Position numbers and translations under genes: made by a program. The notes under the pieces are model-generated. The model was not told where the DNA came from. It was given only the letters and a program-made list of their open reading frames with translations, and made no database searches. From Intoshia linei (taxonomy: Eukaryota > Animalia > Orthonectida), in assembly GCA_001642005.1 (NCBI GenBank), contig LWCA01000262.1, positions 1 to 35,672 of the forward strand: a stretch of DNA of 35,672 bases, in the 5' to 3' direction. Shown piece by piece: positions 328 through 28,400 of this stretch. How positions within the stretch are numbered: the first letter of the stretch is position 1; every line of letters begins with the position of its first letter.

Positions 328-599
328 GATTAGACTGTAAATACGACAAGGATAAATAGTTACACTATGCTGGGTTTTTGAGTTAAAAAAACAATACAAA
401 AAATGATAAATATGATTTAGAATAAAGTTAATAATATTGGAAAATATTTTCTATAATTTCTTCAAAAAGCTGATATAAGTCTATACCGATTAGGGAATGA
501 TATTCGATTAATCGAAAACCCCGTTAATCGCTTACAATAATCGGAGAAAAATAATCGGAAGATATTTCGAATAATCAGTGTTTCAAAAATTTATATATG

Positions 600-690
600 A
601 ATACTAAAATGCTTTTTAGACCGTGAAGTCATAACTTATTCTGATTGAAATTTTTTGTGTATGTTAACGTGTTTATATAGCTGAAACGCC
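600..690 (-). repeat. Fragment of the dispersed Helitron-like repeat family
   Basis: gaatactaaaatgctttttagaccgtgaagtcataacttatt...tttttgtgtatgttaac closely matches 3574-3645. Confidence 0.65.
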
Positions 691-1173
691 TCCTTTTAAT
701 ATACGTTTATAATTGCGACGCTCTGTAAATCGCGATTTATCAATTTCTATGGGTTATCTATCGTTCCTACTATTTCCCCTTCCTTACACTGAAAAAATAT
801 TTGAACAGACCACTCGGCAGTAAGTGAACCAATTGTGCTATAAAAACCATATTTACTAATAACGTATCATAAAAACATATTATTACTCCACATATATCAA
901 TTGTAATAGTTTTATCTTTCTATGAATTCGTTTGACATACGAGTTTATAAATGACTAACTATACAGTTTCTCAATCATGATCCATATTACCTCATACTCA
1001 AAAATTCCATTTTTCTAATGAGAACCAGGAAACACCTGCCCTATACATAATTTTTTAATAAAATACAATAAAAAATGAATTATAAATTTTAATAGCGATT
1101 AGTAATCACTTAATAAATTATTAGGCATACAATCATACATTACATTACTTTTCTTGATAAATTATATAGTACA

Positions 1174-2398
1174 TTACATTTGGATGGCATCTTTTCTTAG
1201 AGAGAGAGATTTTATTAAAATTACAGCTTCACTACGAAACTTTCCCCAATAAATCAAATTATTGGCAACATTATAAAATGGGTTGGCTGGGTCGCGCACT
1301 AATGGAGTAGGTGGTTCAAATTCTATATTTTTATATTTATCTAAATTATAGTTTGTGTCCCATTCAATTCTAAAATTATATTTATTAATATTATATACAT
1401 TGTACATTGTACGTATTTACCTTAATTCAATTTTTAGTACCAACTCGCAAAACTTTTGAATGATTCTGTATATATGGGATTTGTGTTCACTAGTTGCATG
1501 GTTTTAATTAAAATAAATTTTAACCTAGTACAATGTACGATAGAGATCCCAATGATTTAACCATGGAAACACCATCATTCAGATATAGTTACTAAGGTGT
1601 CATTAATCATGTTCTCAAATTTTATAATTTAGTTAATTTATATTGATCCACATTTTAACCCACCAATCATTGTAATTCATAAAAAATTTTATTTTTTTAA
1701 ATGTCAATTAATTTGCATTTCACGTCTTTTTGCGAATCCAGTTCAGTAACATTTAGCAATTAGTAGTGAAATAATGTAATAAAACCCTAACAGTTACTTT
1801 TTTACTGATTGTTTGTTTAGAATTGATTATACTGTTAAAGATTGGTAAAATTAATATTTTCATGCACTGTACAAAACACTATCAATGTAAGTAACTATAA
1901 AAATCTTTAAATGAATCGAAAAAGTACATTATTAAGTTTCGTAGGGAAAAAGAAATGTTCAGCCAAATACTCGACGAAATCAAGATAAATTGTCTAATAA
2001 ATGCAAACTGATTAGACGGGTAAGATGACGTTCAAATAAAATTTTTTTAGCATGTTCCGATGTGTGAAAAAAATATACTTAGCTAATCAGCCCACCATAT
2101 TAATAAGTTATTAATAATAACTAAAATAATACTACATTTTAATTTACAATTGCATTAAAATTGACAAAAATTACTTTGCACACAATTCATAAGCTCGAAC
2201 GACTAATAAACAAATTAGATACGAATTTGGTCGATAATTTGTTTTTATCCAATTAATTTTGTTTCTCCAATTTTTAACATATTTTATTGCTGTCTTTACC
2301 TATACAATTATTGTTATATGTAAAAAAATTAAATGTTTACATCTTCGTCAATGTTAAGTAGAAATTTTTTTTGTAATGTAACGATTCCTGGAGATAAT
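1174..2398 (-). CDS. OAS: 2'-5' oligoadenylate synthetase-like protein, C-terminal lobe (4 exons; 5' part unresolved)
   Basis: Exons 2398-2341, 2299-2175, 1489-1421 and 1369-1174, all GT-AG, splice in frame to LSPGIVTLQKKFLLNIDEDVKTAIKYVKNWRNKINWIKTNYRPNSYLICLLVVRAYELCANEHKSHIYRIIQKFCELVLKIELRIEWDTNYNLDKYKNIEFEPPTPLVRDPANPFYNVANNLIYWGKFRSEAVIL. This is colinear with OAS1_C motifs (FS.CF..LQ..F, K.LIRLVK.W, P..Y.LELL.V.AWE, L.I.W..YY, P.I.DPA.P..NVA, W..L..EA). The exact C-terminus is uncertain because a GT donor overlaps the stop. Confidence 0.8.
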
Positions 2399-2435: not shown

Positions 2436-3165
2436 TCCTTACTAATATAAAGTAAATTATATAGTTAAAAATGATTGTCTATTTATTTATTTGTTACCAT
2501 TTATTTACAAAAATAATAAGAGTAGTTATAAGAATACCCATTTCTAATACAGTTTTTCGAGGGTGATGTTTCAACGCAAATTTTATTATCAGAAATTGAG
2601 TCCTTCAAAATCAAAAACCACAAATATCCTTTTTTATAAATTTCAAACGAGTCCTAGAATTATAAAAAATACACAATTTGATTAATATTTTAAAATCATC
2701 AACAGTATACTAAATTTCAATTTATATAAATTTTATATCTTCACGACCAAAACCACAAATAACGCTATTTTTTAAAAAATGAAAAATGTTCTAGATTTTT
2801 ATACACATAAACTGTGCGATAGTTTTTAAAATCATAAACATTATCATAGATCGCAAACCCAAAAAGATTCATTTTCACGGTCAAACTCAGATTGCCCTTT
2901 TTTTAAAAAATAAAAATAGTCCAAGAAATTTAAAAAAAATGCAGTTGATACAGTTTTATCTAGTTAACACACATAAAATTTTTCAGTCTGACCAAGTGAC
3001 GCCTTCATGGTCAAAAAAGCACTTTTGTATTCATTTTTTTTTGTTTCGAAACTATTTTAATAAAACAAAAAATTTAAAACAAATAACTGTTCTACAATTG
3101 AAAAATTGAGCTTATTCTGATACAGCTTATTCCAGTTTATAAAGATGCAAAATTTAAACCACAAA
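2436..3165 (+). mobile_element. Non-autonomous Helitron-like element with internal ~120-130 bp tandem units
   Basis: Starts A|TCCTTACTAATAT, a Helitron-type 5' TC end. The body matches 12142-12730 and the inverted copy at 3427-3963. Internal repeats of (g)tcaaaaccacaaat..ccttttt..aaa...gtcctagaatt..aaaa are visible. The 3' end is not recognised. Confidence 0.7.
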
Positions 3166-3426
3166 ATGCAAAATAAATATTGATCCTCCATTGAACGTCT
3201 ACACATTTACACTAAAAATATATGGGTAGAAATCTAATAAATTGATTCCTGCAGATTTTTTTTTCATTTTCAATACATTTTTATAATAAATTTTGTATAC
3301 AAAATTATTATGTATTACAAAACATTATTTTTGAAATTGTAGGATCAATATTTACATTTTCAATTTTTATTTTAATCAAAATTATTTGAAAAATATTGAT
3401 TGATAATATATTAACAATTATTTTTT

Positions 3427-3963
3427 ACCGGGAATGCGTAGATTTCAGTGGTTGAAATCTTGTATTTATATTAACTGGAATAATTTATCAGAATATTTAT
3501 TTTTTTTTCATTTTCGGACCGTTAATTATTTCACATTTTTTGTTTTAATAAAATATTTCGGAAAAAAATATATGAATACTAACATGCTTTTTTTGACCGT
3601 GAAGTCATCACTTATTCGGATGGAAATTTTTTGTGTGTGTTAACAGGATACAACTGTACCACCTGTAAATTTTTTAAAATTCTAGGGCTGTTTTCATTAA
3701 AAAAAAAAGGGTAATTTGGGGTTTTGGCCCTGAAGATATAATTTTTTTAAATTTTTCAACGTTTGAATTTCAAAAAGAGGGACAATTGTGGTTTTTGACC
3801 CGTAAGATATGAGTTTGCGAGGTTGAACTTTATCTTATTATATCCCCCGGAAAAAACTGTAATTGAAATGTGGATTTTATAAAATTCTAAGACGGGTAGT
3901 TATTGACATAAAGTGGAACACACACACAAACAAATATTGCGTAGCATATTATATAAGTAAGGA
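3427..3963 (-). mobile_element. Non-autonomous Helitron-like element (inverted copy)
   Basis: The minus strand begins A|TCCTTACTTATATAATATGC...TTTGTTTGTGTGTGTG, is colinear with 12142-12730, and ends at CGCATTCCCGGT. Confidence 0.75.
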
Positions 3964-4617
3964 TGAAAGGATTTTGAGACATTTTTAGAAAATATCGAAA
4001 TGCTGAGACTTCTCTAAAATTATGTTATAATCAATTATAATTGAATTACTGTTTTTCGACAAATTTAACTAAAACATTTTTTCAGTGTCCCTATATGATT
4101 TGTTAAAAATTAAATTTTAAATTTTAAAGATTGTAAAAATTATTATAAAAATGTTGGAAAAAGCTCATTTTATGGTTGGTGTAACGACTTTTTGCTAATG
4201 AGAGAATTTTTTTAGACACCTACCATTCAATGTTAAATAAATGATATAAGCCACTCACCTGGAAAAATTTCTTAAGCTGTAAATTATAATTTTAATCAAT
4301 GTCTATTATTTATTGGAATATATCCTTTAATTTATTTAATTTAGCAGTTTCTGTCAGATAAATATGGACAAGTTACAAAGCTATGCTCTGATATTGTCAA
4401 CATTATTCTGATGGAGGATTAACTGCAAATATTGCATTGAATAATAAAAAACTTTAACTTTGTAACTGAACTATCCATTTGCAATTGTAATTTAAATGTT
4501 GTTCCATTAAATTTTATTAGAGGTGTTGTTAGATACAATTGAAATTAACCAATCTCTAAGAACCGTGAAATTTGCTTATATTTATTATAACTTGGTTAAA
4601 AGTATTGATTTTAAATT

Positions 4618-7600
4618 ATGAGTCATTTTGATTTATCCAATAAATTAAAAGGTGTGGGCCCAACCATTGTACTACCCAAAAATTCTATCGATAACATTTC
4701 AGTTCTTCGCGATAAAACTGCTTTAAATGTTAATGATTCGGACACATTTTTGTTAAGATTTGCAAATACTTTTATTGAGGTAAAAATTAAAGTAAAATGT
4801 TAACATATTTAAGAAATATGACCGAGAAGAATTGCAAGAATTGCTCATGTGCCAGTCTTCAAATTGGTTGCTTTCTCAAGATGAATTCAAGTTTCCTATT
4901 GAGCAACCTGCCGGAATAATTTCGGATTTTTCTCATGAAAGTGATTTGGATGATGGTCTAGTTATTTTGTTTCCAGTTTTGAAATTTAACAAAGACCCAA
5001 AGATAATTGAAGAAAATCCAAATGATTTGTCTAACATTGAAAAATTCGATGTACGTGAAATCCATCAAATTATTAATGAACTTACTCACGCCATTTATGT
5101 TCTCAATCAAATTCCGTCTATTCAACTTCACAATGTACGTTATGGACATTTGTATTTTTCTTATTTTTTATTAGGTTTTTGATAAGAGTTCATCTGTTTC
5201 TATTCCTCCAGCCTTTTATGATACCAGAATTGGAAATATCATGATTGAAGTAGACTACATGATGAAATCTATTTGGCATGGAAGTCACTTTCCCTATGAT
5301 AAGAGAATCAAATTTTCAGAGAGGTGGAGAAAGAGCTTGGACGTAAACAAGTATGGTGTTTCTCACACCAAAAAGTCCATTGTAACCGAATTTATTAATG
5401 CAGGTATTTTTGTATCTACACTTGTACCATTTAATAACGGAAAATTTTTAGGATTGGTCGATATATCGATGGATTCTGACTATAAGAATGTGTTTGAGAC
5501 AATGTTTAATGAGAGTGAGGTGAACAATGAAACAGATGATGACATGGAATTTTTTATGAAACACGTTGATCATGTTTCGTTGATTTTAAGTTTTTATCAG
5601 GTGTGATAGACAATATATCAACCTCTTAATTTTATATTTAGAACAGTATTCGTAAATATAAGAATGCATATATAATAGACCCTGCTTCAACAATTGACTC
5701 CAAGATAAATTTAGACATGGAAGATTTAAACGAGTTTACGTATAATCGGTTAAATTCGAGACTTCAACTACAGACTCATCTTTTAAATAATCATTTAACA
5801 GATAAACGGATGATTGCGAGAAAGGTTCACTTGTTGAATTTGATATCATTTTTGACACCGTGTTTTATAAATTTACGTAAAAGACATTACATACCAAATA
5901 TATTCAATTTATTATCTAAAATGTCATCAGAAGAGTTAAAAACTGAACGTGAATTACCACCATTGATGTTGCAAAAAGGGTTTAGAGTTAACAATTTCAA
6001 ATACAAATCATATGAGTATTTTAATCTACATGGAGGTATTCAATTCGATATCGAAACCCCCGAAATACAGCATATTAATAAATCTTTTAATTTATTTTTC
6101 AATAAGCTTAATAAAGAAACTTCTTTATTCAACGAAAAGTTGCTAGAATTTCAACATCAACAAAAGGAAACAGCAAATCTTCCCATTGTTAAATTTGAAG
6201 GAAAATTGTAATCATTTATTTTCTAACGAGATTTAATGATGATTCACAAATGTTTCAATAATTTTTTAACATTTTTGGATGCTTCAAGTCAGTTCCAGGT
6301 CAATATTTCCATTTTTTATTGCATGAAAATTATATGTCAATATTTATTATTAATTTATTGGAAAATTTATTATTACTATATATTAAAAATGATACAAATA
6401 ACTCTGAAAATACGATTTTTTATCAAATTTTTAAAAGTGATGAAAGGTCTTAAAAAAATGATAAAAAAACCCTGAAAATAAGATTTTTCGTTAAATTTTG
6501 TCAAAAGTAATAAAAGGAACTTGAAAAAAAGTGGTTTTTGTTTAATTATGTCAGAAATCATAATAATATTTTAAAAAATAAAAAAACGACTAAAAATATT
6601 TTTTTAAAATTTTATCCAAAAATCATAAATTTAAAAAAATGTAGTATATTGTATACCTTGATAGTTACGTGTTTTTAAAATAATTTTTAAAAAATGATCA
6701 AATCACCCTAAAAATAAAATTTTTTATTAAATTATGTCTAAAGTAAGTAATTTTTGAAAAATTTAAAAATTATTCATTTTGAACATGTTAGAAGTTATTT
6801 TTGTACCACATATAAAAAATTTGACGGGACCGAACCTCAAAAATTTAATGAGAACATGTCAATATATAGTTTATATTATAAACCATTATTTTTAATGAAA
6901 AAATTTTAAGTGTCCAAAACACTAATTGATATATTTTAATGCCGGTTTTAATATGCACAAAATTAATAATACCCCAGTTTAAATAAGAATATTAATGTCA
7001 CATTTAGGTATTATTATTTTAAAATTGATATGGAGACGTTTTACATGCAAAGTCCACAAAAGCCAAAATGGGTTAACATTTTATCGGAAGAATTACTAAT
7101 TATGAAGAAAAAAATATTTCCAATGGATGATGGGCAATTGCATGATTATTTGAAGAAAATTGTTAATCCCAAAGTCACAAATATAAGAGTTTTTAAATAG
7201 TACACTACAATATATATAACGTGATTTAGAACTTATCTGTGGCATTGAAACTTTCTACCTGTCGGGGTATAGTATCAGTGTTTGATTCAATTTCTCATAA
7301 ATTGTCGACTGGCCGAATTGCTAAAATGGACGACAATGGTTTCAGTGCTATGCATTATGCAACAATGTATAATCAGCCTCACATCATAACAAAATTGATA
7401 CTGGCTACTGTGGATATTAATACAAAACGATCTACTGGGTTTGGTTCTGATGGTAATACTTTATATAGATTTTACATTAAACAATATTATAAGGTGCTAC
7501 TCCTCTTCATTTGGCAAGTGGTAGTGGTTCAGTAGCCTGTGTTTCTTGTTTACTTGCTAATTATGCAAACATTTTACTCAACGACAATCATGGATGGACC

Positions 7601-10600
7601 CCTATACATTATGCTGCGTATTACAACAATTTACCCGTAATTCGTCTACTTTTGCGTTCGATGGATACACTTTTGGAGATACAAACTAAAAATTCGTAAT
7701 TTTTTTCATTTTTATTTTTATAAAAACATAGACACAAATACACTCCCCTTTTATTGGCTGCGACGGCAGGGTCCATGGCTGTTGTGGAACTTTTATGTAA
7801 TTATGGTGCTTCATTGAACGTGGTGGATGGTAATGGAGACGGCATTATTCAATTGGCAGCTTTGAATATTCATACTAGTATTATTTCCCTTATCATGGAA
7901 AAATATGAATCTGTTTTGAACGTTTGGAATATATTAATTGGTAAATTAATGGGTAATTATAAAAAGTTATCAATTTATTTAGAAATGCTTTACAGTGAAA
8001 CCGAAAATCGAATAATGGCATCAATAAAGTGCTTAGAAGTTTTGTCTGTTGAATATGATTCATCCTGGAAACATCTTAAAGGCACTTATTTACTTTTTTA
8101 TGTAGTATTTTTACATATATTTTAGATGCGGTTGTTCCATTGGTGAAATTGTTACGCCACGAAAATTTTTACATTTGCAGCGTTGTTTTGTCTGTAATAA
8201 AAAATATTTCCAATGAACATGAGATCAGAAAAATAATCAGTGCAACAGATATATCCAAATGTTTAATCATTCTTTTATCTTCTAACAACGAGTTGATCGT
8301 GAGTAGGGCTGCTGTTGTCATGGTTTACCTTTATATATTTAATTAATTATTTTAAAAAGAAAAAAAATTTTTTTTTTTATTATTTTTTTTAGAGCGATTT
8401 AGCTACAGTTGCTGAAAACCGAGTTATTTTTGCTAGAGACGGTGCAGGTAAATTTCATTTGAAAGCATGTTATTGACATGGTATATTAAAAATATTTTTA
8501 GTTGATTTATTGCCATCATTGCTTATATCTGATGTTGAGGAAATTTTATCAAATGTAATTTCAGCAATTAAAAACTTGTGCATTAAAAATCCAAAGAGTA
8601 CTATTATATTGTTAATTACAAGTCAACATTTTTAGATCAAACTAAATTTATCAAAAATAATGTGATTGAACCGCTTATTGAGTTTTTAAACGTCATGTAT
8701 GGTATAGTTTTAATTTTTTTGTGTAAAATAAAATATTTGTTCATTAATTTGCATTTAATTAAATTTATAATTTTAAGTAAATTTACACGGGTCTGTTGCA
8801 CTCTGTATTGCTGAATTGGTACGGAATCATTCAAACAATCAAAGCAAGTTTTTACAGGCTGATGTCATCAAGTTTAATTTTGCATTGTTTGTTTATTAAT
8901 TTGTAAATTTAGACACATGATTATGCTTTTGAGTAAATCATTCAATATGAAAACTCAAGTCAAAATTGCTATTGCCATTGAAGCTTTAGCCCATAATAAC
9001 CCAGATTCTCAGAAAAAATTTTTAGAGTGTGATACTCCTAAACTATTGTTATTGATGATGAAGGTACAATTACCCATATTAAGACAGTGATTCTGAAAAT
9101 TCTGTTTCTTGTCATTCCTTACGAATAATTAGAAATTAAAAAAAGGACAATTGGGGTTTTTGATCCGTAAGATGTGAGTTTGGGAGGTTGAAATATATTT
9201 TTTTAACACCCCGGAACAAACTGTAATTGAAATGTGAACTTTATAAAATTCTAAGACTGGTAGTTATTGAAATAAACGATAACACACAGACAAACGAAGC
9301 ATATTATATATGTAAGGATAACTTATGGGATAGTTTTTAAAATCATAAGAATTATCGTAAATTACAATCTAAAAAAAGTACATTTTCATAATAAAACTAC
9401 AGATTACCCTTTTTTTAAAAAATGAAATTAGTCCTAGAATTTTAAAAAAATTACAGCTGTTACAGTTATATCCAGTTAACTCATTTTTATTTTTACACTC
9501 ATACACACATACACATTATAGTTAACTTTATACTCAAAAAATTTTAATCTCACAAAGTGACGCCTTCATGGTTAAAAATGTATAAAAAATTATAGGAGCC
9601 TACAATTTCCCATCTGACCCGGGCTGCTGCTGGTGCTCCACGGTTCTGCACTTAGTTAAATCGTTAATTTTTGAGTAATTAATAATTAATGTTGAATTGT
9701 ATAAACGTTCCATTGAAGAGTGGATTCATACAATCTCCCAGTTTTATACCGACTGATCGTTTATTAAAACTAACAAATTCTGTTTTTTTGTATTTGCAGG
9801 GTGGTAGATAATAATAAATTTTGTTCTACCTCTCTGAAACAATTATAGAAATACACTGTACGAGTGGTTAAATCTAATAAATTTAAATTTAGAAATGGTC
9901 CATCGAAATGAAGGAAAGGTCTGCATTAGGTTTGATTATACTTTATTTACATGTTAATATAAAAGTTATGTGTAGCTATTTGGTCATTGGCGGGAAACAA
10001 ATTATCTCAAAAAAAGTACATTGCATCCAGAATAGGGACACCTCAATTGATTGACATGACTCTAAGTACATCTCAAATTTTGCACTTTATCAGTAAATTG
10101 ATCTAGTGTCCATTTGTAAACATTAAATTAGGTTGTTTATGTATGGACGCACTATCTCAGGGAGATTTTGAAAACCAGATAAAAATAAAAAACCATGACG
10201 GCATTGGACCAATAATCAGACTTTTGAGTATGTTTAAATTATTTCTGTTAACAATGAAATAGAGATTCATCAAAATGATTCGCAGTTATTACTAACAACT
10301 GTCATCAAATTAATTGGAACACTATGCTTGGGAGTTGCTCATCGATCAAATTATCAAACTCAAAGTAAAATTGCATCTGAAAATGCAATTCAAATTTTGG
10401 TCAAAATGATGAATAGTTGTGAAAATTTCAATGTAAAAATTGAAATTAGCCACACCTTGGCTTGTATTATTATGAACAACCCTACTAATCAAATGTTTTT
10501 ACGAAAAAAAACAAATTTTAATTTGTTTTTATTATTGAACATTGTTGGTTCAGATGAAGAAGTTTTTAATCACAATGTATCATTGTATTAATTTTTTAGG

Positions 10601-12120: not shown

Positions 12121-12141
12121 TGAACAATTTGAATTATTTTA

Positions 12142-12756
12142 TCCTTATATAAAATACTGTTTGTCTGTGGGTGTTATTTTTTATTTCAATAACTACGAGT
12201 CTTAGAATTTTATAAAGTCCACATTTCTGTTACAGTTTTTTCCGATGAAAGTAAAATAAATTTCAACCTCCCAAACTCACATATTACGGGTCAAAAAGTC
12301 CAATTGTCCTTTTTTGAAAATCAAAGGAGTTTGAGAATTTAAAAAAATATACATTCTGATACGGATTTTAACAGCATAAATTTAAATATAAAGAAAATAT
12401 ATCTTCAGGGACAAAACGACAAATTACCATTTTTTTTTAAATTTAAAACAGGCCTAGAATTAAAAAAAAATTACAGGTGGTACAGTTGTATCCTGTTAAC
12501 ACACACAGAAAAATTAAATCTAATTAAGTGACGCCTTCACGGTGAAAAATGCACTTTAGTACATATTTGTATTCATATTTTTTAATTTCGAAACTATTTT
12601 ATTAAAACAAAAAATGTGAAATAATTAACAGTCCGACAATTAAAAAAAGAGATCATTCTGATAGAGCGTATTCCAGTTGATATACATGTAAATACAAAAT
12701 TTCAACTCCAGAAATTTACGCATTCCCGGTGTCGTGGAATCGAATGACAAAACTAG
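12142..12756 (+). mobile_element. Most complete copy of the non-autonomous Helitron-like element
   Basis: The 5' end is A|TCCTTATATAAAATACTGTTTGTCTGTGGGTG. The 3' end is CATTCCCGGTGTCGTGGAATCGAATGACAAAACTAG (imperfect hairpin then CTAG). The base after CTAG is C rather than the canonical T. Confidence 0.7.
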
Positions 12757-13530: not shown

Positions 13531-14044
13531 TTAAAATGTATAACTTAAAATAACAATTTTATCGTGAAGAAATTTGGGCCGATAAGTAGAAGATGAATCT
13601 AGGATTTTAAAACCAATAAATCGTAACATTCTCAAAATTTTGTTAAAATGGAGATTGGTTGAATCAATACAAAATAAGACAATTTTGCATTTATCATAAG
13701 AATTTTCGATTTTATCAATAAATGTAATTAGAGCATCTCTAGATCCTTTAATAAGAAATTCATTATCAACCATGACGTATATGGAGTCATTAGAAATTTT
13801 AAAACAAGTTTCGTCAGGAATTATGCATTTCCAGTTTATATACCGATTTTCGTTTGTGTTTGTTTTTATTGTAATAATACCGTCAAAAATACTGCAGTGG
13901 CCCAGCGTCACGTTGCTTAGTAGTCATGAACATTGAGTCGTCCCTAGAAAAGATTTAAATTACAGTACAAAAATCATACTTTGAATTCTCTATATTTAAC
14001 ATTGATGTTTCTATCAACTCTTTCAACTTTTTATGTTGTAACAT
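13531..14044 (-). CDS. OAZ: Ornithine decarboxylase antizyme (ORF1 + ORF2 joined by programmed +1 ribosomal frameshift; about 158 aa)
   Basis: ORF1 starts at ATG 14044, has a 36-nt intron at 13979-13944, and reads ...RDAGPLQYF-TGA (41 codons). The +1 frame continues DGIITIK...GSRDALITFIDKIE..YDKCKIVLFCID...KILRMLRFIGFKIL...P......ILSYTF, matching the ODC_AZ domain (GSK.....LL..AEE, L...F.FLGF.I). Confidence 0.93.
13882..13903 (-). other. Programmed +1 frameshift site GGG CCA CTG CAG TAT TTT TGA C
   Basis: TTT at 13888-13886 and TGA at 13885-13883. The upstream GGG CC context parallels the metazoan antizyme GGG CCN .. .. .. TCC TGA site. Confidence 0.9.
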
Positions 14045-15056: not shown

Positions 15057-15872
15057 CTAATTTTCAATATTAATAAAATTAATTTCTAAATAAGTAAAAT
15101 TTAATACATTAATAATGTAATATGATAAAAATTTACCCTCTACAAAATATGCCATATTTTAATATATTAGCATATAAAACTTACTATTTAAACGGTCTTC
15201 TAAATTGATTTTGAATGAATTAATTAGTTAACGATTACATACAATTTATGGCATATGGACAAAATGCGTCCCCCGATACTTTTGATCCGTGATACAATGA
15301 ATACACGGATATTAGTTATATGATTTTACTAAAATCATAACTAGGATGTCAAATTTTTTAGTGGACCCTCTTTATTGTAATATTTTATGAATGATAGTAT
15401 ATGAAAAAATATAACATTACTTACTATAATTAAAGCAAATGTAATATTAAAATTAATGAGTCAAGCATATATTTTTATTTTAGGTATACTTCCTGATTAA
15501 TAAAGTAGGTAAAGTAAATTTAAAATACAATGATATTTTCACATAAATGTAACAATTAATATTAACAAAAATTACCTACTAGATTATATTTATATATTGA
15601 CGAATATATATGTTTCATTTACATTCTACAAATTGAATTTATTAACAGTTTTAATATTAATTTACTCATCATATTAAATATATTATTATCATATCATATT
15701 AAAAATTATTATTAAATTGAAAAAAATAAATAAAATACCCACTAAACTTTAAAATTAAAACTAGCCAAAAATATAATATTTAATATTACAAGCTTTAAAA
15801 ATAATTTATAAAAAATAATAATTATAACATAATTTAATGTAATTTTTTAATAATTACTTAAATTATCTCCGT
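15057..15872 (-). other. Microexon array of paralog A (seven 3-nt exons, two 15-nt exons)
   Basis: AG|exon|GT at 15872-15858 (15 nt), 15792-90 CTT, 15741-39 TGG, 15625-23 AAT, 15578-76 TAG, 15492-90 GAA, 15423-21 TAA, 15199-85 (15 nt), 15139-37 AGG, and terminal exon 15085-15057. Confidence 0.8.
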
Positions 15873-18800
15873 CTATAAATGTATGGTTATGTATTATTAT
15901 TTATAATACCTTGTAAATTATTATCTTGGCAACTATTGTCTGTACAATTCTCTAAAAAATTAGTAAAATATAAAAATTCAAACCTTTGCAAATCTCACCA
16001 TCGAGGTAGAATCCAGATTTGCACAATAAACACGTTTCTCGATTGTCTTTACAATTGCTGCAATTTTCTATAACACATTCTAAAATTTATAATGTAATTA
16101 TATATATTACTATTAATAAATTACTTTCACATCCTTTTGGAATAAATTTGTATCCTTCTCTGCAATTTGTACATAATACTCCATTAGTTGATATACATCC
16201 TTCTACTTCTTCGATACCTAGAAATGTATACACATCTTGATAGACAAACTTTTGCACGTTGAACCGTCCTTCACAAAGCCATTCAAACATATTGAACATT
16301 TCGTTAGTTTATTTTCGTAGCAGTTTTTACAATTGGCAATTTCACAAACTACATATTAGTTTATACATGAAATTGTACGGATTGGAATCATTTACACCAG
16401 TGACCACCAAACAATTACAGGCAAACCTGACCTGCCATTTTATAAAAATTATTATTAATCAATGATTAGTAATTATTATGACCCTCATTAACTTAATAAA
16501 CTTGTGAAATGCGGATATTGTGCTGTTGATGATGCAACTATTAATACTATAATCACATCTAGACAATTAGAAACTTATTATTAATGCAAATATTAGTAGA
16601 ACAAATCAATATTTTTAATGTTCGATTTTTGTCTGTTTTTTATCATTTTGTTTGGAAAGTAAATCAAAACGTTAGTGGTAGTGATTATGCTCGGGAAAAT
16701 AACAGAGACGCAAATTCCCGGGTTTCCCAAATAAAATTGTTGAACAAATTAAAAAATAAATAATATGCAACATTTTGTTGAAATATGAATGTAAAGGTGA
16801 TAAAGCAGTGGGTAAGGTTTGAAACCAAATGAAAATGAATAAACATAAACTATAGATGAAACAAACAAATAATTCCATTTATAAAACAAATGAAAACCAC
16901 ATTAAAAAATAATTAATTAATCAAACAATTGATAGTTGAGCTGATGTGTAGTGAGGGCAATAGCTAAAAGTGAATTTAATATGGAGATGTTAAGAATAAT
17001 ATGTTTTACAAAATTTATAAGTAACGAAACGAGAACCCGTTTAAAGGACAAATCTATAAACATGTTATGTGTTTTAAAACACTTTTTAAATATTATCACA
17101 TAAACACACGTATCAAATAAATTTTTTTTATATTTCTCGGAAAATCACAATCACTAGGTAGTGGTCACTGATCAATACCTTCACATGTAGTTTCGTTTAC
17201 AAGTGTAAACCCATCAGTACATTTCGTACAAAATAGGCCATTGCACTTGGTGCAATTTTGAATTTCAGAACAATCTAATTAATAATTTAAGATATTTATA
17301 TACATATTTATCTGATTTACCTGTGCATGTTGAATTTTTTAGATAAAATTCTTTGTAGCAATGTAGACAGGTTATACCGTTACAACTATAGCATATTGAT
17401 TTGTCGCATTCTAGAAATGTAGAAAAGTTACATTTTAGTTTAATATACAGTGCATCAGAGCTACTTCACCTTTTGTCTAGAACGTCCCATTTTATACGTT
17501 TTTTTGTGACCCGAATTTTAAATATTATCGAAATACTGCTATTTAATCGTTAGACCCAAACCTGATATGGTTGTGAGATATTGAATAATATACACTGTAT
17601 ATCCTTAATAAAGATATTGTATGGATTCCTTACATACATGTACAGGACACTGTACATTGTACAGTCAACTCTCTCTATAAGAACAACTCAAAAGACTCAA
17701 CTCAACTACAAAAGAAGACAACTACAATACTTAGAGAGAGTCGAAAATTAGTGTAGTGCATAATAAAAATGTTAGCACATTAGAGCAGAAAATGTACTAT
17801 ATATTGAAAACTGTTTTTATAGACAGTGTTCTTATAGACAGAGTTTACTGTATATAAAGTAAAAATTTCTAAATATTTATGTGTTTTAAATATTTATTCA
17901 GAAAACATACGACCCAGAAATTTCAAATATAAAAATTATAAATGAGTTTTATCCGACTTGGATAAAGATCTGGTCTGGTCTCTAATAAAGTGTCAGATTC
18001 ATGGCCAAAACCCTAAATTACCAAATTTTTTTTATAAATGAAAAAATAATAAAGAAATTCATAGAATTTTAAAAAACACAAATTCTCAGATATTTTTTAA
18101 AATCGTGAGCATTATCATAAATTATATCATAAATAACTGACATTTTCACAGTCAAAACCGTAAATGAACAATTATATTGAAAAATTAAAAACCTAAATGT
18201 TCTAGAATTTAAAATATCTCGCAGCTAATATAGAGATTTCCAGTTAATATACACAAAAAATTTCTATCCCTGAAAGTTACTCATTCACAATAAAAAAATA
18301 AATACTATTTTATCTTTTTTTGAAAGTTTACCTACTGGTTTCTACTAAATTACAAAATAAGCAATATAAATGTATAAAATCCAATAATTCATTTTTTGTA
18401 AAAGAAAATTGGTTGCTTTAATGAGCAACCGAAAAAATCGTCGCGGTTTTGAAAAGATTCCATCATATAAAATTTATATTATAAATAAACGATAGTTTCA
18501 CATTATAAATAATCTAAGATAGAAAATGATACGTGCGCATATTTTCTCTGTCGTTAGAAAAAAATCGACATCACAACTTGTACAACTATTTGGTTTTTGA
18601 TTCATGCATGTTTTACAACTAGGATCACATTCTAAAAATGGGAATTTTCAAATTTTAAATTTTTACTTATATAATATGCTGTTTGTCTGTGTGTATGTGT
18701 GTTATCGTTTATTTCAATAACTACCAGTCTTAGAATTTTATAAAGTCCACATTTCAATTACAGTTTTTTCCGGGAATTTTAGAAAAATACATTTCAACCT

Positions 18801-21800
18801 TCAAAACATCTTACGGGTCAAAAAGCCCAATTGTTTTTTTTTGAAAATCAAACGAATTCGAGAATTTAAAAAAGTATATACTCTGATACGGATTTTAAAA
18901 TCATAAATATTATCATAAATTTAAATTAAAAAAAATATATATCTTATAATAATTATGAAATATAATAAAAATATGTTAATAATAATTTGACTGTTTTTAC
19001 TTTATTTATAATATTATACACACATTGTATCTAATAAATTAAAAAAATGGAATAACAATTGTTTTTAATTCTTTACACAAATGTTAACAAAACAAAATTA
19101 ACATGATATAATTCACTTTAAAGTAAAACATAATTTGATATGACGGTTCAACCTGAAACAAGTTTAGGAACCACTCCTTTAAAGGATTGATAATAGTGAA
19201 TAGTATGATTTTTAAGTTAGATTTTCAACGTGAATTTATTTTTTGTGTAGAATAAAAATGTGCCCTCGACAGAGCTATGTGCTGTTTGTACATAGTACAT
19301 AACAGTCAACTTAGTTTTATAAAAATTTACATTACTTTCACATATATTTGACGTCACAGGTGGATTGGTTTTATAATATCCATCCAAACAAACGGTGCAC
19401 AAATCTGGAGCAGTGCTACATTCTTTGCAAGGTTTATTACAAGCTACAACAAATGTTATTAGAAAATGATAATAAATTATTTTTTATTGTTTCGTGGAAT
19501 TGATATTAAAAGTTCAAGTACCATAACATTCTTTGGTTGTCGGTACAAAGTATCGCCCAGATATACATGTTTTGCAAGTTTGATAATTTACTTCACATTC
19601 AGCACACGTCGAATTACAGTCTAATAAAATGTACAGTATTCATGATTAATCCAAGTCAAAGTTATAAAATGATAAAAACAATAATGTAAATCTAAATTAA
19701 TTGGCAAATTACAATATTATAAGCTTATATATTATAGGTATTTCTTCTAAAACTAATTTCATCTCATACTACATAACAGAAAAAGCATTAAAAATGTTTC
19801 ATGGAAAACGAAATAATTGTTTGAAAAATTTTTTTAACATTATGAACTCTGAAATACGTTTTATCAGATTTACAACATGACACTACAAGGCATTGCAGGG
19901 GACTGTGGCATTAGAAAAAATGCATTAAATTTTTTTGAGGATATTCTGTAGTAAGCGCAATTGTTTCTCTTATATTTTCATTTATAAGTAAAAATATAAA
20001 CGTGACTATATATAATATGCATACGTTTTTTCAAAACATTATGAATTTATATAAAAATCACCTCTACAATCAAATGATGCGTTTGGTAAAGTTATTTTAA
20101 GTTGATTTCTTCGACACTCTAAACATTTAATATTAAATTTTAATATAATATTAATAATTTAAAAATTTTTAAAAGTATGTTCGACGTTGATACGGCACTG
20201 ATAGTGTGTAGCATATTGTTCAAAGAGACACAAATACATTTTGCTTTTTTACAAAAAATTTTTAGTTAAATTAAATATGCCCTTAGCCTACTTATAAGTA
20301 CATTGTATATTGTATTATAATACTTTAATAATAGTTTTAAATGGGAACAGTGGTTTTTTACAAAAAATAACCAATAAACCTTTTAAAATGTGCTGTTCAT
20401 AACAAACCATAGAATTATTGGAAAATAATCTAATTATAGTAGGAGTCTTGCAATGCGATCTGAAGCACAAACTTAAAAAGTTCATCCATAACCATCATTC
20501 AATAACGGCCATTAATGAACTTGCGCCGTATTGCAAAGTTCTACTTGTAGTCTATGTTTATTCAAAGTATAACATAGTACCTGCACAGTATCCTGCACGG
20601 GTATTGGTATCATAAAGAGTTAGAGTTAAATTGCAACCTAAAATATTTTTATATTACACATCGTACGCTCTTGATATATGTTAATAAATTGTACTTTCGC
20701 ATTGATCAGTGATTGTATTTAAATAAGTGGACTCATTACAAGATGTACACTTATTGGCTTTTACCGCACACGATTTACACGATGTATTACAAACTAAATA
20801 TAAAAAGTTTTAAAAAGATAGTATATTTTGTTACGTGAACAGTTCCCTGCAGATGTAGTGCTATTACTAATTGTCAAAAATTCATTATCAGTACAACCTA
20901 TTAAATTATAGCCGATTAAAACAATAAAATAAAATAAAAACTGACGCAGGCTCCGCGTGGACCTTGACTTGTTGCATTATTGGTGGATAGCACCAAAAAT
21001 TGGTTTTCAGTGCAGTCTAAATAAAAAATATGTAAATATCAACAGAATTTTTACTTTTACACTTTCCCGTGGTCAAATTTGTGTTTATAATTGTGTAATA
21101 TTCATTAAGTTTGCAAACTAAACATTAAGTTGAATACTTAAAATATATACATAGCAGATGGTAATCTGTATAACCATCAACCTAAGAATGTATGAACCGA
21201 TCCGGTCCGCCTTAAAATGACCGTAATTCATTTACTGAGAATTAAAAAATATTCAGTATTTTAAAATAATAATACATATGAATTTTAATACGAAATTAAC
21301 AAATTATTATAAACAGAAATTACTTTGAGAGCCCTGATATGTCTGACATGAATGTGAAAAAAGTTTATCAGCCCCTTTTATATAGAAAAAATTTATTATA
21401 CTTACCTCCACATGTAAAATCTTCTAACAACACTTTGTCGTCAACACAACTGGTGCAGTGGTCTGATTCTTCTATGCAAGTTTTGCACAATATATCGCAA
21501 TCTATTATTTTAATGCTTTAATGATTGTATATATACTACGTATATATGTATATTGTATTGTATAATAATTTATTTTAATATTTACTGATTTGAAAACAGA
21601 TTTAAAGATATACAGATGTACTACATATCAAACTTGAATTTCCACAATTTTTGCATCGATCCCAGAGGTTTGGCAACCTTTTGCGTCTTGTGGGTCACGT
21701 TTTTATATCAAAAAATTCTTCGGTCCCCGTTTTTGAAAATTTACACATGATACATTTCAATTTTGACTAAAGAGAAACGATTCTAGTGTATTCAACAAAA

Positions 21801-24173
21801 TAATATTCAGGGCATATGAAAATTCAGAATTAAAATGATTATAATGAGCCAATTATAATAGAAAATGTTTAAAAGTTTAAAAGTTAAAGATTTTTTAACA
21901 TTAATTATTTTTAATTTTTAATTAGCATTCAGAAAAATGGTTCATTATCTCGAAGGCACGATTGTACGACCTTTGTGTATATGTCTAACAAGATTTATTA
22001 CAAGTTTCATTGATTATATTACAAGTTATATTAGTAATTTTTAGAAAAGGTGTATTTATCTTAAAGGCTGTACGTATTATTATTTTTTAATGGCTAATAA
22101 TAACGTTCTATAAGTCAATCGCACCCAGTCTTTTTGATTTTGCAATGCGTTTCATATAGTTAAAATATTCGAATCCCTCATAATTTTGTTATAATAATTA
22201 TTTACCTTTACATTCCGACAAATCAGTTAAATATTCATTATCCAAACATGAAGTACAGCTATATGATTTGAAATTGCAAGTTTTACAACTTGTGTCACAA
22301 TCTATAAAAATAAATTGAATAAATTAATAAATTAATAATAAATTAAAAAGAATCGTTTTAGTTTATATAACAGTATATGGCTTTGCCGACGAAAGACGTT
22401 TGCAGATATTTTTCATTATTTTATTAATCACAAAATTAAATTTAATTTTTTATATTATATTAAAAATTGTTTTAAAATAAATTAACAGACTTTTGATAAT
22501 TCACTTACCAAAAATGCAAATAATCTAAATACACTTCAATTATTTTCGAAATGTTAATGGGAGTTATATTACAGTTGTATGTTAAATTTTAGTAAATGTG
22601 TAAAAACTCGAAGTAACCAATTTTTGTATTTCAAGTATATAAATTCATTCTTAATTTTTTAGAAGTGTATGATGAATATTAAATTTACATTTTTCATTAT
22701 AATTCAAAAAATTTAATAAAAAGTGACGGACGAAATATTAAAATTCGTTTGACCGGTAATATGTAGATTTCTGAGTTTAAATTTTTTTCTCTAGGTTACC
22801 TGGAATAAACAGAACCAGAGTAATCTTTTTTTAAATTATAGGATCATCCTTTACTTATATAAAATTAAGTGTCTGTGTGTTACCTTTTATTTAAAAATTA
22901 ATTATGAATAAATGAGTATATAATAAATTTGTTTTTCGACCGTGAAGGCGTACCTTTTTGAGATTTAATTTTTTTGTGTAAGTTAACTGGAATAATTATA
23001 TTAGATGTAATTTTTTTAAAATTCAATGACTATTTCATTGGTTTTTTATTTTTCAATAATTGGTAATTTGTGGTTTTGACAATGAAGATAGAAAATTTAA
23101 ATACAAAAATTGATGACACTGCAGTTATTTTGAAAACTGTATGAGATTGTGAATTTTTTATAATTCAGGGATTCATAAATAATAAATAATAAATTATTTT
23201 TTATTCAATTATTGGGCGGCCAAAACTCATGTCGTGGGTCAGCTTTTGGATCATTCGTTTAAAATGAATATTAAATGATAATTTTATTTTCTTGTACCGT
23301 AACATTCTCCAATCGATGCAGTCTCATTGGTATAAATTAAGTACTGATTAGTTTGACATTCTAGATATTTCAAAATTTAATGAATTTAAATTGATTATGT
23401 ACCGATGCATGTACCATTTAAGATGTATCTATCATATTGACAATTTATGCATGATGTTTCTTCTATGCCTATGCATTTATTACATGTTTCGTGGCAAACT
23501 ACAAAAAATCTTAAAACTGAAAATCGCGTAATATAAACCATAACAGATACCCAATCTTGTTGATTTATCTGTTATAACCAGAGAGTTTTCTTCAGGGCAA
23601 ACTAATTTTGAATTTCAAATTTTATTTAAAGCTGGATACGTGTACACTTTCCAGTATTCAAAAATTGTGGAGATGTACAACTTGTGCAATCGGTATATGT
23701 TTGATTTTGACACGTTAAGCAGTTTTGGTGACAACCTAGAATGCGATTTAAATTAAATTAAAACAATATTTTACATGTAAAATCTATAAATATATATCTA
23801 TTATAATAAAACCTTCACATCCACCATCTATGTTCAAAAATTCAGTATCTTTGCAACTAAGGCAATTGATTGCATACTTCTCGTTACAACTTTGACAGGT
23901 AGCATGACAGTCTATATTATTTTAATTGTATTTAAAATTTAAGTACGTGAACAAACTGAAAACCATTCCATAAAATCCATTTTTGTATACCATTTGTATT
24001 GATTTTCAGAGCAATCTAAATTAAATTAATTTTCTGATTCACCAAGATGTACTTTGTGATTCTGAACCCATTATACCTGATACTATACCTGTGAGGGCGT
24101 ATGAAAGAGATTCACCATTCGATCCGTTATATAAGCAAAGTATAAATCCAAAAATGAAAATATTTTTATGCAT
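15057..24173 (-). CDS. Secreted furin-like cysteine-rich repeat protein, paralog A (about 34 exons including 3-nt microexons)
   Basis: ATG 24173 begins MHKNIFIFGFILCLYNGSNG (signal-peptide-like). Exons encode CHATCQSCNEKYAINCLSCKDTEFLNIDGGCE, CHQNCLTCQNQTYTDCTSCTSPQFLNTGKC, CSEIQNCTKCNGLFCTKCTDGFTLVNETTCE and similar repeats. Introns checked are phase 1. The predicted stop is TAG at 15059-15057. No protease or transmembrane domain was seen. Confidence 0.82.
17662..17850. mobile_element. MITE, pogo/Tigger-like (Tc1/mariner superfamily), 189 bp
   Basis: TIRs CAGTCAACTCTCTCTATAAGAACA / CAGTAAACTCTGTCTATAAGAACA (22 of 24 match), with TA on both flanks. Confidence 0.85.
17995..18300 (+). repeat. 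Internal fragment of the Helitron-like family
   Basis: Two tandem units plus the tccagttaatatacacaaaaaattt block shared with 2700-3020. Confidence 0.6.
18663..18945 (+). mobile_element. 5' half of the Helitron-like element
   Basis: ttacttatataatatgctgtttgtctgtgtg...tcttagaattttataaagtccacatttc is near-identical to 12142-12400 and to the reverse complement of 9135-9318. Confidence 0.75.
22847..23170. repeat. Rearranged Helitron-like fragments (5' end on +, internal part on -)
   Basis: atcctttacttatataaaa...gtgtctgtgtgttacc is followed by the inverted internal segment gaccgtgaaggcgt...gttaactggaa...ggtaatttgtggttttgac. Confidence 0.6.
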
Positions 24174-24355: not shown

Positions 24356-25461
24356 TTAATAATGCTTTTTATTTACAATTTTATTTATTTTGATAAACGA
24401 TATTTCTAAAATATAAAATAAATTATACTTATTACTTTAAATATATTACCCTCTAAAAACATTATACATATAAGTACTGATGACAAACAAATGAATATTG
24501 TATTTAGTGTAATAATATAAATACAATAGAAATAACCAGTTATGGGAAAGTGTTGAATGTTGGAAGGCTACACTGACGTCACAAAGAACGCCGTTAGAAG
24601 TAAATATTTTGTAATTTTTTTCATCGGTTAAAAGCTGGTCGGCTTAAAAACACATGAATTGGAATTACATCCCATAAAAAAGTAACATGATTGCTAAAAT
24701 CTGGTAAGATTTACTTAATTTTTGTTCTAAATTATACAATTATTTAAAATTGCTCAGAAGACCACATTAAATCGCGAATTAAACTCTACTTTCCCATATC
24801 TGCAATATATCACATAATATGCAAATAATCTAGATAGAAATTTTAATATTTTTCTATGTTTACCTTTCAAGCGTCTTACTAAATAACATTTTAAATTTAA
24901 ATAATATTGATAACTAAAAATGAGAGAAAGTAAAAACAATACTTACTATGATTTATTATTAATATTAAAAATATAATACAGCATTCAATTAAATATTTTT
25001 ATTTTATTGTATACTTCCTAATTAATACAGACAATAAAAATCAATTTAAAATACAATGATATTTTTACATACATGTAACATAATTAATATCAAAAAAATT
25101 ACCTACTGTATTATATTTTTATAAATTTATGAATTTAATTTAGTGTACGGTATAATTGTAATTTACATTCTATAAATGAAATATATTAAAAAATACAATG
25201 TAATGTTTAAATTAAAACAATTAAATAAAATAATTTACCTACTGAACATTAACATTAAAACAAATAAAAAATATATTATTGAATATTACATGCTTTAGAA
25301 TAGATTAAAAAAATGAGCCAAAGAAAAAAACATACATTAGCCATGGTTATGCATTTACCTTCTAAAATTTATTAAATTAATATTATTATTATGAATAATT
25401 TAATAATTATATTAATCTGCAAATAATATAAAAGTTTTATTATTACTTGAATTGTGGTCAT
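24356..25461 (-). other. Microexon array of paralog B (eight 3-nt exons, two 15-nt exons)
   Basis: AG|exon|GT at 25461-47 (15 nt), 25361-59 AAG, 25292-90 CAT, 25241-39 TAG, 25169-67 AAT, 25105-03 TAG, 25017-15 GAA, 24945-43 TAA, 24878-64 (15 nt), 24452-50 AGG, and terminal exon 24405-24356. Confidence 0.8.
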
Positions 25462-28400
25462 CTATAAATTTATTATAAAATGTATTCACTACATTTTTAA
25501 TCTAACCTTGTTCATTATTTTCTATGCAATTATCGTCAATACAGTTCTCTAAAAAAAATAATAAAATTAAAAATTAAAACCTTGGCAAATGTTTTCATTG
25601 AGATAAAATCCAACTTTGCAATATAGACACGTTCCGCGACTGTCTTTACAATTTCCGCAATTTTCTACGCTGCATTCTAATTTTCATATTGTAATTAATT
25701 ATTTTATGAAATTACTTTCGCATTCATGTCCAAGAAACTTGTACCCTTCTTTACAATTAGCACACAATACTCCATTAGTTGCTGTACATCCGTCTACTAG
25801 TTCGATACCTAGAAATGTATACATGATTTAATAGGCAAACTTTAAACTTTTGCAATCTGCGCCGTCTTTAACAAACCCGTCTAAACACACTGAACATTTT
25901 AATAATTTGTTTTCATAGCAGTTTTTACAATTAGAAATTTCACAAGCTAAAAATGATTTGAATTTTTAATCTCTTAAATATTTTGTAATTTCTGCATTTA
26001 TACCATCGCATTGAGTTTCATTTATAAGTGTAAAGCCATCAGAACATTTCGTACAAAATAGACCATTACACTTGGCACAATTTTGAATTTGAGAGCAAAC
26101 TTAAAATTAAAATATTTTATCAACTTTAAATACCGATACATAATCCGTTTTGCAGGAAATAGTCTTTGTAGCAATGTAAACAAGTCACGCCATTACAGCT
26201 ATAGCACTTTGATTTGTCACATTCTAAAAATTTTCATTTTCATACATAAAAATTTTAATTTAAAAAATGATACCTGCGCATGTGTTTAGAGTGGTCAAAT
26301 AAAAGTCAACGTTACAACTATCACATCCACTTGGCCCTACCGCATCACACGTTTTACACGAAGAATGACATACTAATAATATGTATTTTATTTCAAACAG
26401 TAGCCATTACCTTCGCATATCTTACTACCGACGAAAACTGTAGGGTTTAGATAATACCCATCTAAGCAAGCTGTACATGTGTCTGCATTCGTTTCGCATT
26501 CTCTGCAAGGTTTGTTGCAAGCTATATTATACTTTTATAATTCGACAGTCCAGTGTTTCTTGTATGGAGTCCAAAGACCCAAGGAGTATAATTTTCAAAA
26601 GGGGTTCACGAAATATTTTGTATTATTTATGTATAAATCGTTATGATTTAAATAACATAATGTTATGTTAATAATTATCACAAAAATGTAATGTTTATTA
26701 ATTTGTTTTTATTGTCAAATTTATCCTACGTTAACCTTATTGTTGGTAAAATGATAATACCCAAACATTTCTTTAATTCATCTACAAAATAACGACCAGT
26801 AATGCACAATTTGCAAGTGTGAATTGTTCCTTCACATTCAGCACAAGTTGGATCACAGTCTATATTAATACATATTACATTATACAGTGTTGTGCTCTGA
26901 GATACGAGCTATTGAGCAACTCAATGAACAATATTGTGCATCTAAATACGGACTAGTGTGCATTCACATACAGATAATTATTTTAAATACATTTTCTGGA
27001 TAACTTAATTTACAAGATGTTGCTTAAATTTAATTGTTAATAAAATGTTTTCAAAGTTTTCATTACTTGCACAATACATCGTATGTACCTCGTATCTCGG
27101 TGCACAACTCTGTAATACATATAAATTAAACATTTTTAATAAATTAAAATTAAATTGAATAATTTATTGATAATTTTAATTGTTGTCCGACCCATTGAAA
27201 AGTCACCGTAGAAAATATAAATTTATTATTACTAATAATGTATTAGTATATGTATTTGTAAAAACTACCTATACAATGAACGTGTGATATGATATAATAC
27301 AATGAACCGTTGGCGATTGTCTGTTTTAGTTGCGTTCGCTTACATTCTAAATTACTATAAAAAATAATTCAAATTTATTTTATAATTAATTTCTCTCAGA
27401 CTGAGCCATTATTGATTAGCCGGCCAGTTTGACTGGTCTAAAAAATTAACTACACCCTACAAAAAATTTTACACTAAAATATTTTTGTAATAATTAAGGA
27501 TTTAGAATACCATATACAATTAAATCTTAAAACTTTTATAGTTGGGACAGTCTTTATTATATTATTTAATCTACTCAATACACAGGTATTAAAAATGTAA
27601 AATAATATCACCTTCACAGTAACCTGCACGCGTTTCATCGTTATATATGGTTAGTACCAAATTACATTCTAAATATATGTAAGTTATTACAAATATTATA
27701 TTAAAATGTATTTTAAACTATAATTACTTAAATATATATGTTGCATAGAATGTGTACAACTGTGAAATATACACATTACACGGGCAAATCGTAGAATGTA
27801 TTTGACTAAGAATGTGTCTTAGACGCCAATTCAGAGTTAAATACATAATTGATGCTTTCCTAACAACGAATTTACCAATTCAGTTAAATTAATAAGCTCA
27901 TGTTTATTTTTAAATTGATTTGTATTTGTAAAACTTTCATTTAATTAATATCAAACCATTTAATTACGATTTTTTTTGAACCAAACTTTCAAGAGGGGTT
28001 TTTAAGATTTTTAGAAAACAAAATAATTGATTAGTTATCAAATGATTTCTGTGTCAAATATCGTGTTTCCAATTATAAATTTTATATTTAATAAATTGAA
28101 TTAATTATTTTTTTGTTTTATAAAATTGACAGTGGTAGAATTTAAAAAGCCCAATACGTAGTACTGTTTTTCGCAGGGATGTTGAAATATATTTTTCAGA
28201 TTCCGAATTTAAGTCCTTCAGGGTCAAAAACCCAATTTGCCCTTTTGTTTCAAAATAAAATCAACCCAAAATTTTAATACAACATAAATTCTGGAATGCG
28301 CTGTAAAATCATCAACATTGTCGTAAATCTCAGCGTCAGAAACGCACACATTCTTGGTGAAAACCACAAATTACCATTTGTTTTAAAATGAAATGTCCTA

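Follow-up and report, generated by a model that had tools for sequence, protein, structure and literature searches.

The window analyzed here, a 35,672-nucleotide (nt) stretch of Intoshia linei DNA (LWCA01000262.1; contig C261 of an assembly of 41.6 Mb in 3520 contigs with ~26% G+C), carries on its minus strand two tandem paralogous genes for Cys-rich proteins, gene A (about 24173 to 15057) and, upstream of it, gene B (ending at 24356), each followed by a tail of AG-NNN-GT motifs that we propose to be exons of three nucleotides. The body of both genes is a string of ~96-nt exons, each of phase 1-1 and each encoding one CXXC-rich module of ~32 residues, with the pattern C-x3-C-x2-C...C-x2-C that is also found in a third paralog, gene C. 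The product of gene A is predicted to be a secreted protein, in which a signal-peptide exon is followed by ~20 furin/VSP-like CXXC repeats. The introns agree with the published median intron length of Intoshia linei, 57 bp (PMC6543705).

The proposed exons of gene A that matter for the argument are the following.

24089–24173, minus strand: candidate first exon, 85 nt (28 codons plus 1 base), with an ATG, a hydrophobic signal-peptide-like stretch (judged by eye) and a phase-1 end at a GTATAG donor
15984–16079, minus strand: last full Cys-rich repeat exon (furin/VSP-like CXXC), 96 nt, phase 1-1
15910–15951, minus strand: 42-nt exon (ENCTDNSCQDNNLQ), phase 1-1; homologs at 25507–25548 (gene B) and L019:6130–6171 (paralog C)
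15858–15872, minus strand: 15-nt exon (DGDNL), GTAATT donor
15790–15792, minus strand: 3-nt unit CTT, AAG acceptor, GTAATA donor; CAT in B, synonymous (Thr) in the spliced frame
15739–15741, minus strand: 3-nt unit TGG, TAG acceptor, GTATTT donor; TAG in B, synonymous (Leu) in the spliced frame
15623–15625, minus strand: 3-nt unit AAT, same in B
15576–15578, minus strand: 3-nt unit TAG, same in B, no stop in phase 1
15490–15492, minus strand: 3-nt unit GAA, same in B
15421–15423, minus strand: 3-nt unit TAA, same in B, no stop in phase 1
15185–15199, minus strand: 15-nt exon (KDRLN); the B homolog, 24864–24878, is likewise 15 nt
15137–15139, minus strand: 3-nt unit AGG, same in B (24450–24452)
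15057–15085, minus strand: proposed terminal coding piece, 29 nt (EINFINIEN and a TAG stop); its homolog in B is the beginning of the terminal exon (EISFIKINK...)

The first-pass annotation of this DNA had described a minus-strand series of AG-NNN-GT motifs after the last Cys-rich exon, with GTA donors and introns of 44–113 nt, and every unit that it listed is found in its place: the donor begins with GTA at all seven 3-nt units; the introns between the first six units measure 48, 113, 44, 83 and 66 nt; and the acceptors of the seven are, in order, AAG, TAG, TAG, TAG, CAG, TAG and TAG, i.e. YAG in six of seven. As all exons are of phase 1-1, each triplet would complete one codon with its first two bases and open the following codon with its third, so that the C-terminal tail would be built at one residue per exon (...DGDNL-T-L-E-L-G-I-KDRLN-K-EINFINIEN). 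Joining the pieces in phase 1 by script reproduced the peptide that had been claimed, ...QDGDNL-TLELGI-KDRLN-K-EINFINIEN-stop, which runs without a stop to the final TAG despite exons that are literally TAG and TAA. The predicted tail is hydrophilic, and micro-exons are confined to it in gene A, where they hold about 27 of several hundred codons.

Such motifs are far more frequent in the tails than dinucleotide composition predicts. Tail A (15057–15866) contains 10 AG-NNN-GT motifs, compared to 1.21 ± 1.06 in 2000 dinucleotide shuffles, and 7 AG-NNN-GTA motifs, compared to 0.51, whereas its opposite strand contains 1–2 such motifs; the AG-NNN-GTA counts are 8 vs. 0.76 for tail B (24356–25548) and 5 vs. 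0.46 for tail C on contig C207. No shuffle reached the observed count in any of the three tails. An additional, eleventh motif at 15371 (AG-AGG-GTCCAC) has a weak donor and is not present in gene B; it is probably no exon, and the first-pass annotation had made no use of it.

The tail in paralogs B and C

The paralog had been said to share this architecture, and the tail of gene B does so piece by piece.

24356–25548, minus strand: tail of paralog B, architecture as in A
25507–25548 and 25447–25461, minus strand: 42-nt exon and first 15-nt exon
25290–25292 (CAT), 25239–25241 (TAG), 25167–25169 (AAT), 25103–25105 (TAG), 25015–25017 (GAA) and 24943–24945 (TAA), minus strand: 3-nt units
24864–24878, 24450–24452 and 24356–24405, minus strand: second 15-nt exon, 3-nt unit AGG and terminal exon
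25359–25361, minus strand: extra, well-formed candidate unit AAG of B only (TTTTAG-AAG-GTAAAT), in an 85-nt insertion without a counterpart in A

The internal exon lengths of A and B are equal in 10 of 10 cases (42, 15, 3, 3, 3, 3, 3, 3, 15 and 3 nt), whereas of the ten pairs of homologous introns a single one, 48/48 nt, is of equal length, the other nine measuring 37/45, 65/154, 113/69, 44/61, 83/85, 66/69, 221/64, 45/411 and 51/44 nt (A/B). Indels are therefore common in this region, yet the three-base spacing is untouched at every unit. The six microexons differ between A and B at two bases in all (CTT/CAT and TGG/TAG); as both changes are silent in the spliced frame, TLELGI would be encoded by both genes. 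In the second 15-nt exon (KDRLN), a one-base shift is offset by a compensating deletion, so that the exon returns to frame and still measures 15 nt, and the residues RL..EI.FI.I are retained downstream. Reading through the donor of the first 15-nt exon would instead append unlike tails, of 3 codons in A and 11 codons in B. The extra unit AAG of gene B is possibly a newly born microexon, dividing an intron of 154 nt into introns of 85 and 66 nt; if used, it would change Thr to Lys-Ala.

A genome search with the last Cys-rich exon identified the third paralog, C, on contig C207, with 48% protein identity in that exon. Its last module exon is followed by a homologous 42-nt exon (DCLSEDNCIGKDAR) and, directly after that, by five AG-NNN-GTA units (AAA, TTT, TTG, AAC and GAG), with introns of 37–83 nt and an open phase-1 frame. 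When the tail DNA of A was searched against the genome, B was the sole match, and no similarity to the tail DNA of C was found; the presence of the units in so diverged a paralog therefore indicates that the architecture predates the A/B duplication and has outlived any recognizable similarity of the introns.

Two further relatives of the module family were observed. At C1055:13590–13679 (minus strand), one member is part of a reading frame that stays open over 840 residues; it would be a relative of the three genes with few introns. The 1.2-kb contig C244 (positions 1–1191, plus strand; L021) carries five module exons close to those of paralog C and ends before the tail; it represents a further copy or else an uncollapsed allele.

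Arrays of the unit at other loci

About ten other loci of the genome carry strand-specific arrays of YAG-NNN-GTAW, and the three-base-unit phenomenon is confined to a few loci. The array sample comprised ~150 kb from nine contigs (C1428, C1593, C1697, C970, C1164, C2698, C1321, C2340 and C197). The loci were chosen by the motif, yet their units far exceed what that selection demanded. The arrays extend as follows.

C1697:1–17900: array
C1593 (whole): array
C1164 (whole): array
C970:1–8000: array
C2340: array
C2698:22000–41710: array
C1321:18000–23088: array
C197: array
C1428:22900–30193: array
C1428:22871–22934 (L003:873–936), plus strand: array head, with a clear ATG and signal-peptide exon and a phase-1 end, then a 12-nt exon, two 3-nt exons and the array to the contig end

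The strand bias of these arrays is nearly complete, with ratios of YAG-NNN-GTAW between strands of, for example, 34:0, 41:1 and 33:0 per ~10 kb. The three-base spacing is equally distinctive: when the spacer was varied from 0 to 30 over 55 kb of the other array loci, YAG-N3-GTAW occurred 184 times, whereas every other spacer occurred 5–24 times and spacer 3 on the antisense strand 7 times; the minus strand of the window itself has the same peak, with 31 for spacer 3 vs. 5–17 for the others. The flanks of the array units equal the ordinary splice consensus of the species (position −1 is T in 70%, and GTA is followed by A in 75%), and the three inner bases contain ~31% G+C vs. ~13% in the flanks. 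The putative introns have a median of about 78 nt, and 3-nt exons would follow one another in uninterrupted runs of 5–12. A scan of the other arrays for signal-peptide exons gave one convincing case, that of C1428, and many AT-rich false positives.

The arrays allow a test of translation that rests on the genome alone. If neighboring triplets are joined and read in the phase of gene A, the third base of a unit combines with bases one and two of its successor, N3(i)+N1N2(i+1), into a junction codon, and no stop can be allowed there. Of the 198 junction codons between adjacent units, 2 are stops, whereas permuting the partners gives an expectation of 11.6 (P < 5e-5); the counts were 2 of 136 (P = 0.002) for the first set of loci and 0 of 62 (P = 0.012) for an independent second set, fetched afterwards. 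The depletion is gone as soon as one unit is skipped (7 stops vs. 7.6) or two are skipped (4 vs. 5.2), and triplets taken 15–25 nt off the units yield 15–21 stops per 198. In the first set, stops among the triplets are about as frequent as their composition would lead one to expect (14 of 220 vs. 17.6); over both sets, 28 of 382 triplets are stops. From the avoidance of stops at adjacent junctions it follows that the triplets are most likely joined consecutively and translated; bases separated by more than 40 nt of DNA thus co-vary in a manner that is understandable only if consecutive units are spliced together and translated in the phase of gene A. As the depletion is lost on skipping, selection sees the all-inclusive product, and this control is also an argument against combinatorial skipping being what is selected.

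The arrays do not look like a DNA repeat. Tandem Repeats Finder (TRF) detected no tandem array in the tails; neighboring array introns are no more alike than unrelated introns (mean score 19.7 vs. 19.2, P = 0.16); and comparison of the array loci with one another revealed no common array sequence, the similarities between loci being dispersed transposon-like pieces. With no sequence shared among arrays and neighboring introns no more alike than others, the arrays are not a DNA repeat; a tandem repeat or minisatellite is thus ruled out, there being neither a TRF array in the tails nor recognizable similarity between neighbors. The dissimilar introns, the TRF result and the transposon-like nature of the similarities also argue against an origin by recent tandem duplication of an intron-plus-triplet unit. 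Most microexon arrays reach a contig end, and the assembly tends to break within arrays; the array pieces may be parts of fewer, much longer genes.

A dispersed repeat family (75–90% identity; probably copies of a transposon resembling miniature inverted-repeat transposable elements), richer in G+C than its surroundings, was observed in introns of gene A, and it also breaks up microexon arrays on other contigs. Its copies are located as follows.

Window 18650–19326, 12141–12731, 3322–3975 and 9136–9483: dispersed repeat copies
L006:3659–4535, L007:1249–1956, L008:5377–6300, and L009:1–400 and 2676–3022: dispersed repeat copies in other stretches

Interpretation and rival explanations

We consider it likely, with a probability of roughly 0.78, that the AG-NNN-GTA units beyond the last Cys-rich exon truly are 3-nt exons and that gene A uses them constitutively; the splicing of the RNA, its order and the exact last exon are what we infer from the DNA. 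The earlier proposal that the motifs serve as phase-1 3-nt exons is strengthened by the equal exon lengths of the paralogs, the silent changes, the compensated frameshift, the units of paralog C and the junction-codon stops. The tail of gene A would then be one instance of a gene design present at about ten loci of the genome, and we think it probable, if slightly less so, that these loci represent a class of genes with a short intron inside almost every codon, that ordinary genes can carry the same arrangement as a grafted tail, and that the spliceosome of this animal handles long runs of 3-nt exons routinely and constitutively.

In the mechanism that we envisage, the short AT-rich introns (44–113 nt here, with one of 221 nt) would each be recognized across the intron, i.e. 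by intron definition, and would be removed one after another, leaving one triplet per step. The footprint of U1 on the donor and that of U2AF on the acceptor would overlap on a 3-nt exon; because of this overlap, the two introns flanking such an exon probably cannot be engaged simultaneously, and an obligatory order of removal would result.

Several observations weigh against the reading of the units as translated exons. A genome-wide search for the triple pattern gave no overall excess over its backward control (212 vs. 482; 61 vs. 50), the hits clustering on few contigs, and TAGNNNGTAA occurs 5982 times in the genome vs. 5404 for TAGNNGTAA, i.e. ~10% more. The open phase-1 frame over ~20 junction codons is weakly significant for tails A, B and C alone. 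The introns of A and B are ~80% alike as well, and base conservation alone therefore does not mark exons. If the donor at 15858 is left unused, reading through it meets a stop after 3 codons (...DGDNLSNY-stop), a simple alternative 3′ end for gene A, and in the predicted spliced tail of gene A we found no recognizable domain, membrane anchor or glycosylphosphatidylinositol signal.

The last two points would fit a reading in which the splice sites are used but the array is non-coding in gene A, the protein ending earlier (e.g. by intron retention after 15858) or the triplets lying in a spliced 3′ untranslated region. We regard this as quite unlikely, as TLELGI is kept through silent changes and RL..EI.FI.I is kept downstream, the length of the 15-nt exon is held by a compensated frameshift, exon lengths stay multiples of 3 in three paralogs, the read-through tails of A and B are unlike, and the other arrays avoid stops in a frame-specific manner. 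It is somewhat easier to imagine, though still unlikely, that the triplets are real exons used as alternative cassettes: all units are symmetric, being of phase 1-1, so that any subset keeps the frame, and the result would be variable tails as proposed for the micro-exon genes (MEGs) of schistosomes, for which PMC10399815 reports alternative splicing; the extra unit AAG in B, without a counterpart in A, would also fit. In the arrays of the genome, stops are avoided at directly adjacent units only and not at joins that skip one unit or two, so that selection acts on the product with all units included.

Readings that dispense with splicing fare worse. YAG-NNN-GTAW might be some other strand-specific signal that merely resembles joined splice sites, such as a protein- or RNA-binding site or the unit of a small-RNA cluster. 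The units do lie in very AT-rich one-strand clusters, as do some small-RNA clusters, the 21U-RNA loci of C. elegans being an example. We nevertheless consider this very unlikely: the two halves of the unit are the very 3′ and 5′ splice consensus that the ordinary introns of these genes have; the spacing of the units matches intron lengths; arrays begin after signal-peptide exons in the matching phase; and the co-variation of distant bases, which avoids stops in one frame only, needs joining and translation. Chance clustering could appeal to the abundance of the words TAG and GTA in AT-rich DNA and to the genome-wide counts given above, but it is rejected by the shuffles, the spacer scan and the strand ratios, and is left with a negligible probability: the local excess over shuffles is 8- to 15-fold in the tails of three paralogs, the strand ratio reaches 41:1, spacer 3 alone is enriched, and the motifs are conserved across paralogs.

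Should RNA data confirm that the units are constitutive exons, exon size would be at its lower limit, with six to twelve consecutive exons of the smallest in-frame length in constitutive use. Such runs would be hard to square with exon-definition models and with neighboring U1 and U2AF footprints; they would need strictly intron-defined, probably ordered splicing, and the order in which the introns are removed would become open to a direct test. A part of the proteome, the secreted products of the parasite, would be hidden from gene finders, annotation and read aligners. The tails of the three paralogs constitute a compact test object of about 900 bp, a size suited to the polymerase chain reaction, with a predicted product, and the adjacency-only avoidance of stops provides a purely genomic test that is transferable to other genomes.

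Known systems and neighboring features

The nearest known kind of gene is the schistosome MEG. According to PMC10526429, the MEGs of S. mansoni have exons of 3–81 bp, long introns and secreted products, which tempers the novelty that had been claimed for a run of consecutive 3-nt exons. Our literature search found no paper on such runs, nor on microexons in Intoshia. The likeness is one of gene architecture: in both parasites, a signal-peptide first exon is followed by very short symmetric exons, in multiples of 3, and the products are secreted. Here, however, the exons are overwhelmingly of exactly 3 nt and stand in uninterrupted runs of 5–12; introns, which reach 5 kb in MEGs, are short (array median about 78 nt); all exons are of phase 1, and the skip control favors constitutive over combinatorial use; and genes A, B and C carry the run as a mere tail grafted on a long conventional Cys-rich gene. 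Most of the coding sequence of a MEG lies in symmetric micro-exons (at most about 36 nt), which is not so in gene A with its body exons of ~96 nt but apparently is so at other loci (C1697, C1593, C2698 and others); a first exon encoding a signal peptide, as judged by eye, is present in gene A (24173–24089) and at C1428:22871–22934. What this locus adds is a run grafted onto a conventional gene, a comparison of three paralogs, and the lag (skip) control.

Isolated conserved 3-nt exons are known from animals, namely flies and mammals, for example micro-Ex8 of Drosophila homothorax (PMC7392893) and a 3-base exon of MAP4K5 (PMC8632122). As proposed for the tails described here, they are flanked by canonical AG and GT sites and add one residue without changing the frame; they differ in being single, in lying between long introns and in being often alternatively spliced. 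The recursive splice sites, or ratchet points, of long Drosophila introns consist of AG-GT with an exon of zero length. The resemblance is that 3′ and 5′ splice sites adjoin and that a long interval can be removed stepwise, whereas here three bases stay at each step and are apparently translated, and the intervals are short rather than tens of kb. The units do not belong to this class, which has its zero-length exons inside very long introns: spacer 0 is not enriched (11 sense vs. 12 antisense, compared to 184 vs. 7 for spacer 3), and the introns measure 44–221 nt.

The gene bodies, for their part, resemble Furin-like and Giardia VSP-like CXXC repeat surface proteins (Pfam PF15913 and PF03302) in their CXXC modules of ~32 residues, the Pfam matches being sub-threshold: single Cys-rich exons score 12–15 bits against VSP, Furin-like_2 and TNFR_ELAPOR1, below the curated cut-offs of 28–31. 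They differ in having one module per phase-1 exon, and nothing in those families corresponds to the microexon tail. When 1.84 billion representatives were searched by phmmer with the last Cys-rich exon, the best relatives were only distant repeat proteins, with 38–41% identity; among the relatives so obtained, none is encoded in the window, and no annotated or transcript-derived protein of gene A was present.

Two further coding features were observed in the window. Antizyme genes normally require a +1 ribosomal frameshift; just downstream of gene A, an open reading frame (ORF) at 13531–13911 (minus strand) matches ODC_AZ of Pfam (ornithine decarboxylase antizyme) with 31.5 bits vs. a cut-off of 24.2. 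On the other strand, at 7239–8125 (plus strand), two ORF pieces with ankyrin-repeat matches under the Pfam cut-off belong to an unrelated gene.

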